From positions 372,001-436,000 of the forward strand of contig NC_087453.1 in assembly GCF_036321535.1 (NCBI RefSeq): DNA of 64,000 nucleotides, read 5' to 3'. This DNA comes from Camelus dromedarius. Its lineage: Eukaryota. This document shows, in pieces, positions 43,884 to 47,568 of the stretch. Under the pieces are notes generated by a model. It saw only the letters and a program-made list of their open reading frames with translations. It did no database searches and was not told the DNA's origin. Position 1 is the stretch's first letter. Each line of letters opens with the position of its first letter. The position numbers and the translations under genes were made by a program.

Positions 43884-45614
43884 GGACAGCCGGCGACCCC
43901 TGGTGCCCACCGTGCATCCCTGCGTGCTAGAGGAGTTCTGCTGGCTCTGCACCGCTGATCCTGGGGCTGGGTTTGCTGTGCCCTTTGGTTTTCATTTGCT
44001 TTGTTTTTTCTCTAAGACAAACTTTTCTCTGTGTCCAGATAAGTGTAGGCATCCAAGGGCTTCTGCCAGGGGGGCCGGGGCAGTAAGCCAGGCCAGTGCC
44101 ACACAGGACCCTCACCCGACTCCTACTGGGGCCCAGGGCCCAGGGCCACATCAGGCCTGGACACCACCAACCGCCCCCCCCCCCCCCAACCAAGGCCCAG
44201 GTTGCAGGCCCTGGGGTAAGGCCTTGGCAGGCCAACTCTCCTTTTGGAGCTGCTGCCCCAGCAGGCCAGCATGCCTGGCACCCAGTGGGGCCTTAGGGGA
44301 CCCTGCTTGGAAATAGGGTTTTCCAGGGTGGTGGGGTCCTCTGTGGCTTGCAGGGCGGCTCTGGGTATCGTGCCTGTGGAGGAAGCTGGTGGGGTCATGA
44401 CTGTCTTCAGCCTCTTTCATCTCTGATCCTGGCGGTGGGCTGGAGGCCTCGAGGGAGACGTGGCCCTAGTCCCTGCAAGCCAGTAGGGCTGTGGGTTGTG
44501 ACGCAGCCTCAGGACGGGGCAGGAGAGATCTGCCTGGGAGGCCGTGTGCCCCCTGCACTGGCCCAGCCACCTCGTTCTGATCCCAAGCCAGGAGGGGAAG
44601 CTATGTGGTCATGGTGGGAGTGGGTGCCCCCTCTGAGCCTGCCACCAGTCTAGGATGACTGTGGTCACCAGCTCGGGTGCATTCCTAGGTGGGGGTGAGG
44701 GGTGGTGTGCCCCTCGGGTCTGGCGTAAGGCATCTAGAAATCCCTTTCCAGGCCTATGCCCAGGAGCAGGGGCCCCCCAGGTGAGGACCCTCCCCACAGC
44801 CCCCATGGGGGCTGGCAACACCCAGTGAGCCGAGCCATGGACAAAATAGACAGCTGGAATGGCTCCTATCCATTGTTCCTCTGGAGACCTGGCAGCTTTG
44901 TGTCTGAAGGTCAGGCCCCCCAGACTGTTCTCCCTGGTGGGGCGTGGGAGTTGCTGAGGAAGGGATGAGTCAGGGCTAGGGGTGGAGGCCTGCTGCAGGT
45001 GGGATGACTCATGGGAAGGCTGTGACCCTGCCTCTCACTGGGGCCCTTCCTTGGGGGTCAGGCAGGGGGCTCCAGGGCTGGTGGAGGGAGGGCTCCCAGA
45101 ACAAGGGTAAGGCTGAGAGTCCCCCTGGGTGGGTGAGTCAAGCCGTTTTCTGAACCTGCCCCAGAGGAGAAAAGCCTCATTTCCCAGAAAGCCAGTGGGA
45201 CACCCTAGGCCTCCCAGGAGGCTTTGGCTGTCCCTTCCTAGGAAATCCCTGCTGTTTGAAGTGGGCAGAGTCCACGGGAGTGTCAGGTTGAGTGGGAGTC
45301 CTGGTGCCCAGGGCCTGCTGGCTGGTGCCCACTGCTCTGGGTTGCCATCTGTTCTGCAGTGAGAGCCCCTGGGCTTGGCCGCCCACCCTCCATAAGGCTC
45401 TACCTACTGAGCAGGCAATGGGGGATTGCAGAGCGGGCCTCACGGACCCCACCGCGCCCCACAGCTGCCACCCACTGTCCATTGAGGTCTGTCAGATGGG
45501 GGTGGGGCCAGCCTGAGAGTGCTGGACACTCAGGTCGGCTGCCCAGGTCTTTCCCCACCAGGTGTGCCCACTGTGGCCGGTCAGACGCCACACTGACAAA
45601 TCCGCTTTATAAAA

Positions 45615-45620
45615 AATAAA
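45615..45620 (+). terminator. ARFRP1: ARFRP1 polyadenylation signal AATAAA
   Basis: AATAAA at the end of a ~1.7-kb 3' UTR, abutting the TNFRSF6B 3' end. Confidence 0.7.
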
Positions 45621-45715
45621 GTGACCCAGGAACCAGGTCAGAAGCCTCCTTTGGTACAGCTAGGGGGCCGCCCACGCGGGGGGCTCAGGCCGGGAGTGAA
45701 TAGATGGGAGGGCGC

Positions 45716-47169
45716 TCAGGGCGCCTGGAGGAAGCGCCCGTGGATGCTGCGCTCCAGCCCGGGCAGCCTGTCCGGCGCCTCACGGAGCTCTGTGAGCTGC
45801 CGCCAGTCTCAGCCACAGGGCCGTGCGGCCCGCCCTCGCCGCCGGCAGCGGCGTTGGCAGGCTCCATGCCCCTAGGCTGGTCAGGGCCTGCTGCAGCCAC
45901 AGGAGCCTCTGGGCGGAGAGATCCTGGAAAGCCACGAAGTCGACAAGGGCGCGCTCGCACTCCCTGGTCCCTGCAGGAGGGTGTGGCGAGGTGGGGGCTC
46001 AGTCAGGTCCTCGCTAGGCTCTGGGCAGGGGGTGGTGAGGACAGAACAAAGGAGGAACGAACCCCTGCGGGCTAACAAGTGGGCTAGGCTTGAGCTGTGG
46101 TGGCGGGTCGACCGCAGCTGTGGAACTTCCGGCAGCAGGGAGGCGGGTTGGGGGCGGGGTTCGTGGGTCAACTCCAGGGATGAGATGGGACGCTAAGGGG
46201 CTCAGCGCCTTTCACCACCCTGACTCCATGGGAGGCCTTTAAACCCTCTGAGCCTGTTTCCCGACGTTGGCGGGAAATGGCATCACCCACCAGCGCTAAA
46301 ACCCTCCGCGTGGTGCATTCCCTGGGCCACCCCCACCACCCGAGCTCTCCAAGGTTGGCTCCGTGGGGCTCCGGTGCCCTTCGAACCCACACAACTTCTG
46401 GGAGCCAGCCAAAGCCTCACGCTCCAGGGCTGGCCTCGGACCCGACAGCTGGGGCTCCGCGCCCCATTCCGGCTCACCCAGTGCCCCCAGCTCGCTGGAG
46501 CCGAGTGGGAAGCTCATGCAGTTGGTGCACAGGGTGTCGTGGAAGGGAGTCCGGCACGTTGAAGGCCGGACCCAGGGCTGTGCAGTTGCGGTGCAGCTGG
46601 CACTGCTCCGAGCTCGAGCTACTGGCTGAGAAGGTGCCTAGGGACACGGCTGGCACTGCGTGCTCTGGCTGTGGGTGTTTGAGAATGAGGACAGATTACG
46701 GGGTCAGGAGAGCCGGGGTCGTCCTCGCTCAGCTGAGGTCTTGGCACGGCGGCCCCCCGCACCCGCACCCACTGGGGGCAGCCATGCCGGCGCCGGGCGG
46801 GCAGGGTGTGTGCTCCAGGCAGAAGCCGCCGTGTGCGAAGAAGCTGGGGCGACAGCGGCAGGCGCGGTTATGGGTGGCCCTGCACGGCCGCGCCTCCTCC
46901 TTGCGCTCCGCGTAGATGACGTTGCAGTAGTGGCAGCGCTCCCCGTAGTTCCAAAATTATGTGTAGTGGCGGGGCGGGCACGTGCCGCACGTCGTGGGGC
47001 TGTCCCAGCCTCCAGGCCGCTGCTCGAAGGTGCCCAGGGATCACTGGCTGCACACCAGCCACCCCCCCGCCTCCGCGTCTCGCCACGGGTAGGTGGGCGC
47101 GTCCACCGCCGCCCCGTGGGCCGCGAGAGCCAGCGGCAGAGATGGCAGCGACCAAGGAGGGGCCCTCAT
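45716..47169 (-). pseudogene. TNFRSF6B: TNFRSF6B (decoy receptor 3) unitary pseudogene: remnant exons 46773..47169, 46478..46678 and 45716..45970
   Basis: Recognisable DcR3 peptides (APTYPWRDAE, DSPTTCG.CPPRHYT, CRATHNRACRC, GTFSASSSSSEQCQ.HRNCTALG, ECERALVDFVAFQD) in the syntenic position. It carries in-frame TGA (47041-47043) and TAA (46957-46959), an exon-2 acceptor changed AG>AA, and three frameshifts. Confidence 0.9.
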
Positions 47170-47568
47170 GGTCTCGCTGGAGCAACGGGGGCCTCCAGGT
47201 CATATAAGGGCCGGCCTGGCTGCGCCTCCGCGGGAGCCCCTCCCCTCCCCGCCGGGGGAGACGTCGGCGACCAGGGGCCTAGGCTTTGACCCACTTCTGG
47301 CCCCCGCCTCCCCAGAGCCCAGGGGAAGGGTGGTCCCGTGAGGGCCCCTAAGCACCATGGGCAGCTCATGGCCCCCTTCCCAGGCCTGGCAGTGGGAGGG
47401 TGGAAGGGGGGAGCAGCACCCCTCCTACGGACAAAGTCCCTGGAGACACCTGCCGCTGAAACCAGGTGGGAGGGAGACTGCCGAGACATCCATCCCATCC
47501 TTCCCGGCACCCTCAAACCCACCACCCTGCCCAGGCCACGCAGACCCCATCCCAGTAGTGGCAGCAGC

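Follow-up and report, generated by a model that had tools for sequence, protein, structure and literature searches.

The decoy receptor DcR3, product of the gene TNFRSF6B, is a soluble protein that restrains three signals of cell death and inflammation. In humans it has been studied intensively as a biomarker and as a drug target in inflammation, autoimmunity and cancer, and good models of its biology are difficult to obtain, since mice and rats do not have the gene. In a stretch of dromedary DNA of 64,000 nucleotides, referred to here as the window, the minus strand carries between positions 45716 and 47169 what looks like TNFRSF6B with its reading frame broken in many places. Is this the true gene or a stray copy of it, are the breaks real, and when did they arise?

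The explanation we favour, with a probability of roughly 0.93, is that the dromedary orthologue is dead as a protein-coding gene, that a single event on the camelid stem inactivated it, and that it has been subject to neutral drift since. Translation ends with residue 42, short of a complete first cysteine-rich domain (CRD1). Beyond this point follow a second stop, the loss of two more structural cysteines and the destruction of the exon-2 acceptor, and three frameshifting deletions together with a deletion of 14 codons disrupt the remainder. The inactivation itself would be later than the divergence from the remaining even-toed ungulates and earlier than that between Old World and New World camelids.

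Identity and layout of the relic

The source of the window had been described as a probable camelid. It is the dromedary: the first coding exon of ZGPAT (about 37.2–38.2 kb, minus strand) is 100% identical to ZGPAT of Camelus dromedarius, the next best match reaching 89%, and the 2.1 kb of the TNFRSF6B locus match a second assembly of the species (GCA_000803125.3) at 99.9% identity. Over the same 2.1 kb the identity is 98.3% to the Bactrian camel (GCA_048773025.1), 97.6% to the wild camel (GCA_009834535.1) and 91.9% to the alpaca (GCA_048564905.1); the camelid regions were taken from the ZGPAT loci with 10-kb flanks. The two dromedary assemblies differ at two positions in the 2.1 kb. One of these is 47007, where the window has T (codon TGG) and the other dromedary assembly, the Bactrian camel, the wild camel and the alpaca have C (CGG), probably a polymorphism within dromedaries.

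To which member of the TNF-receptor family does the relic belong? The stop-free pieces of exon 1 were queried one by one with phmmer against solved structures. Human DcR3 (PDB 3MHD, 3K51, 3MI8, 4J6G and others) is the best match for each of them. The 59-residue piece that follows the TAA stop matches it with an E-value of 7e-27, compared to 3.5e-10 for OPG (osteoprotegerin) and 3e-5 for DR6, and for both the piece between the two stops (E 1e-6) and the N-terminal piece (E 1e-4) DcR3 is the sole family matched. The relic is hence closer in sequence to DcR3 than to other members of the family.

The genomic setting points the same way. Gene calls in the camelid loci give the order RTEL1, TNFRSF6B relic, ARFRP1, ZGPAT, LIME1 and a ZNF704_C-domain gene, which we take to be the order at human 20q13.33 as well, and the placement of TNFRSF6B by RTEL1 and ARFRP1 is kept in the camelid, warthog, orca and donkey loci. 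Within the window itself, exons of ZBTB46 and ZGPAT can be recognised next to the relic. Like human TNFRSF6B, the camel copy has three coding exons, with RTEL1 upstream and ARFRP1 downstream in a tail-to-tail arrangement, and these align exon by exon to the splice models of three intact species. A maximum-likelihood tree of the locus, ((dromedary,(Bactrian,wild)),alpaca) as sister to (warthog,orca) with the donkey as outgroup, reproduces the species tree. Because the best score, the position between RTEL1 and ARFRP1 and the three-exon layout agree, the relic is the true TNFRSF6B orthologue at the ancestral locus. A reading as retrocopy or paralogue is ruled out by the introns, the synteny and the tree.

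The limits of exon 1 were set by alignment to the exact three-exon models for warthog, orca and donkey together with the structure matches to human DcR3. All features of the relic lie on the minus strand. Exon 1 (46773–47169) starts with the ATG at 47169–47167 and covers the signal peptide, CRD1, CRD2 and the start of CRD3. It is followed by intron 1 (46679–46772), whose GT donor at 46772–46771 is kept in camels and whose acceptor at 46680–46679 reads AA, and by exon 2 (46478–46678), which holds CRD3 and CRD4 in 201 nucleotides as against 204 in intact genes. Intron 2 (45971–46477) has an intact GT donor and AG acceptor, both of which are kept in every species aligned, and exon 3 (45716–45970) encodes the C-terminal tail up to the terminal TGA at 45716–45718. 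A TATA-like motif at 47202–47207, also on the minus strand and about 35 nucleotides upstream of the ATG, is found in camels and in the intact species and is mutated in the alpaca; it is a putative promoter element.

Shared and private lesions

The lesions were mapped in a MAFFT alignment of eight sequences: the window, the second dromedary assembly, Bactrian camel, wild camel and alpaca on the camelid side, and warthog, orca and donkey as intact references. For the latter three, unique three-exon models with GT–AG introns translate exactly to the annotated proteins of 297, 297 and 304 residues. The intact status of these three species was established from DNA, that of pig, peccary, bovids, musk deer, beluga and gray whale from annotated proteins. 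The annotated DcR3 of pig, peccary, musk deer, beluga and gray whale is of normal length (294–299 residues), and a protein search also returned annotated DcR3 proteins from cattle, goat, carnivores, bats, primates, afrotherians and xenarthrans.

Seven disabling lesions are common to both dromedary assemblies, the Bactrian camel, the wild camel and the alpaca. Three of them fall into exon 1. A TGA at codon 43 (47041–47043) takes the place of the TGC that encodes a CRD1 cysteine in intact species, and the alignment to human DcR3 places the stop on the cysteine after 'VCAQ'. Another CRD1 cysteine is lost at codon 53 (47011–47013), where 'RPC' of human DcR3 reads 'RPG' in the window: the codon is GGA in camels, GAA in the alpaca and TGC in the intact species. 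A second premature stop, TAA at codon 71 (46957–46959), replaces the CAG for the glutamine of 'HYTQ'. The acceptor of intron 1 (46680–46679) has changed from the AG seen in warthog, orca and donkey to AA. Exon 2 has lost one nucleotide between 46645 and 46644, a placement that is ambiguous by a few bases, and exon 3 has lost two nucleotides between 45806 and 45805 as well as a segment of 42 nucleotides, or 14 codons, between 45775 and 45774. Could the TGA at codon 43 be read as selenocysteine? This is ruled out by the subsequent TAA, the three frameshifts and the dead acceptor.

Further lesions are confined to single lineages. Only the three Camelus species carry a 2-nucleotide deletion in exon 2 (between 46547 and 46546, minus strand) and a change of the last base of exon 1 (46773, minus strand) to A from the G of intact species. 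The dromedary alone has lost a cysteine of CRD2 at codon 86 (46912–46914, minus strand), where TGC has become TAC and 'NVLC' reads 'NVIY'; the TGC is retained in the Bactrian camel, the wild camel and the alpaca. Private to the Bactrian camel are an extra G in exon 1 and another exchange of cysteine for tyrosine, and private to the wild camel are an 11-nucleotide deletion in exon 2 and an extra T in exon 3. The alpaca has its own set, namely deletions of one nucleotide each in exons 1 and 2 and of two nucleotides in exon 3, a change of the intron-1 donor from GT to CT, and the mutated TATA-like motif. These younger lesions are nested in accord with the phylogeny, which argues for an old pseudogene and is a pattern beyond the reach of assembly errors.

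The original prediction had read a disabled TNFRSF6B from the letters of the window, and this reading holds. Its two stops, its two further cysteine losses (both also seen in the alignments to human DcR3), its AA acceptor, its 1- and 2-nucleotide deletions in exon 2 and its 2-nucleotide deletion and missing segment in exon 3 all recur on the minus strand, and its coordinates were correct to within a few bases. The dromedary relic does not have an open reading frame that spans the four cysteine-rich domains and keeps every structural cysteine. The differences from human DcR3 are two premature stops, three missing cysteines, a dead acceptor, three frameshifts and a deletion of 14 codons in the camel copy, and they make a DcR3 protein impossible from this locus. 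In all camelids examined, TNFRSF6B is a pseudogene.

Timing and reality of the loss

Can we tell when the gene died? Since the seven common lesions are found in three Camelus species and in the alpaca, the inactivation is best placed as a single event on the camelid stem, before the Old World and New World lineages separated. The independent loss proposed from the window is sharpened by this: the gene died on the camelid stem and not in the dromedary alone, and it is intact in warthog, pig, peccary, bovids, musk deer, cetaceans and donkey.

The substitution pattern adds a second line of evidence. Nei–Gojobori counts were made in the frame of the warthog gene, and codons with gaps or stops were excluded. 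Between camel and alpaca they give a dN/dS of 0.95 (44 nonsynonymous and 15 synonymous changes), compared to 0.32–0.41 for pairs of intact genes; for the camel–alpaca pair an omega of 0.41 or less is rejected (P ≤ 0.002) and an omega of 1 fits (P 0.49). The relic can therefore be described as evolving neutrally since its inactivation. For the reconstructed camelid stem the value is 0.58, between those of intact and neutral sequences. Neutrality over the whole stem is rejected (P 0.017) and constraint is rejected only marginally (P 0.005–0.07). This would fit a gene that was constrained for part of the stem and dead before the Old World/New World split. The neutral share of the stem is a rough figure, about one third by the omega method versus about two thirds by the lesion count, and a closer dating is unwarranted.

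That the lesions could be errors of assembly or sequencing, and the gene intact in the animal, is a thought invited by the composition of the locus region, whose GC content is 65–71%. One lesion of the Bactrian camel assembly does sit within a run of G. The window itself is free of N. The original prediction had held an assembly error to be unlikely, and the comparison bears this out: an identical set of seven lesions is seen across five assemblies of four species, among them GCA_000803125.3 as another assembly of the dromedary, which might have shown an intact reading frame and instead carries the shared lesions. In addition, 14 runs of the organism that the window comes from, drawn from seven studies, contain 0.99–1.00 of 192 31-mers sampled from positions 45500–47400, where support is expressed as the k-mer share of assembled contigs; some of the 14 runs have no flag as a possible source of the assembly. 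An artefact on this scale, with a neutral substitution pattern on top, is hardly conceivable. The five assemblies, the nested lesions, the neutral dN/dS and the 31-mers of the runs together exclude both an assembly error and a private allele.

A gene can be lost from one place and live on in another, so that the TNFRSF6B locus would be a discarded duplicate and a functional DcR3 would be encoded elsewhere in camelid genomes. Such a non-unitary loss is very improbable, considering that the relic occupies the ancestral syntenic position and has its introns, and that the 64-kb window holds no second DcR3-like match outside the TNFRSF6B locus. A protein search that returned 78 DcR3 homologues contained no camelid protein, with camelid proteomes being present in the database searched; this search speaks only weakly against a second copy, since the gene calls of 287–298 residues that exist for the camelid locus itself (see below) failed to appear in it as well.

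The locus could also have lost its coding function and yet persist, either transcribed into a non-coding RNA or included in read-through transcripts from RTEL1, with some regulatory role. RNA-seq assemblies from the reproductive tract contain 0.73 of the 31-mers of the locus (45500–47400), and both the TATA-like motif and a 3' end motif are kept in camels. The same assemblies, though, contain 0.71 of the 31-mers of intron 2 (45990–46460), and an intron share that equals the share of the whole locus suggests RNA that is unspliced or stems from read-through, carry-over of DNA, or a genotype that diverges slightly, and points away from a processed DcR3 message. With camel and alpaca differing by about 8% and the substitutions looking neutral, we consider a regulatory afterlife of this kind unlikely. 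RNA-seq assemblies of a second organism label gave shares of about 0.71–0.73 for the whole locus and for intron 2, too.

Annotation and meaning of the loss in camelids

The relic has not gone unnoticed in genome annotations. In coordinates of the ZGPAT-flank loci, gene calls from ATG to TGA lie over it in the alpaca (779–2250, 287 residues), the wild camel (666–2147, 298 residues) and the Bactrian camel (660–2116, 289 residues), and none of the three products has a Pfam hit on record. An uninterrupted model with one or two introns of the GT/GC–AG type that yields 287, 289 or 298 residues was found in none of the alpaca, Bactrian camel and wild camel sequences. As no such splice model gives these lengths, the products are probably frame-corrected, low-quality models of a dead gene, which suggests that the current annotations at TNFRSF6B in these three species do not reflect a working gene. 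A related oddity is present in the 2012 assembly of the wild camel (GCA_000311805.2), where an RTEL1 model of 1258 residues extends into the TNFRSF6B relic (locus positions 1–1973) across a stretch with two N gaps.

A screen for gene losses in 58 mammals, which took in both alpaca and Bactrian camel, reported a loss of TNFRSF6B that is confined to mouse, rat, two hamsters and the prairie vole (Turakhia et al. 2020; PMC7498332). The muroid loss is likewise lineage-wide and occurs in otherwise healthy mammals (PMC7498332). It differs from the camelid loss in that the latter affects a distant order, is an event of its own and has left a recognisable relic with dated common lesions. The evidence supports a camelid loss that is independent of the one in muroid rodents and is the second in mammals besides that of mouse and rat. 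According to a review from 2025 on the TNF superfamily in vertebrates, which makes no mention of camels, TNFSF6, TNFSF14 and TNFSF15 all bind DcR3 (PMC11762692). We found no published report of a loss of TNFRSF6B or DcR3 in camelids, and genome-wide orthology tables may already flag it; apparently this is a clean and ordinary lineage-specific gene loss that has so far been unreported.

What would the loss mean for the animals? From what DcR3 is known to do, camelids would, as is the case in mice and rats, be without a soluble decoy for FasL, LIGHT and TL1A. They would thereby provide a second, independent natural knockout of DcR3, this time in large and long-lived animals, and immune data on the TL1A, LIGHT and FasL pathways of camelids should be read with this in mind. 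One may go a step further and propose that the loss on the stem was no accident, and that it altered the FasL/LIGHT/TL1A axis or was offset by changes in it. This is an unlikely proposition; were it true, camelids would be a natural knockout among large animals, would differ measurably in how they control inflammation and apoptosis, and would in this be convergent with muroid rodents.

Decay of this gene may have happened elsewhere, too. The TNFRSF6B entry XP_006903867.1 of another mammal, marked 'LOW QUALITY PROTEIN', is 285 residues long and 58% identical to pangolin DcR3, and many of its cysteine positions are altered; it may represent a further independent decay of TNFRSF6B.
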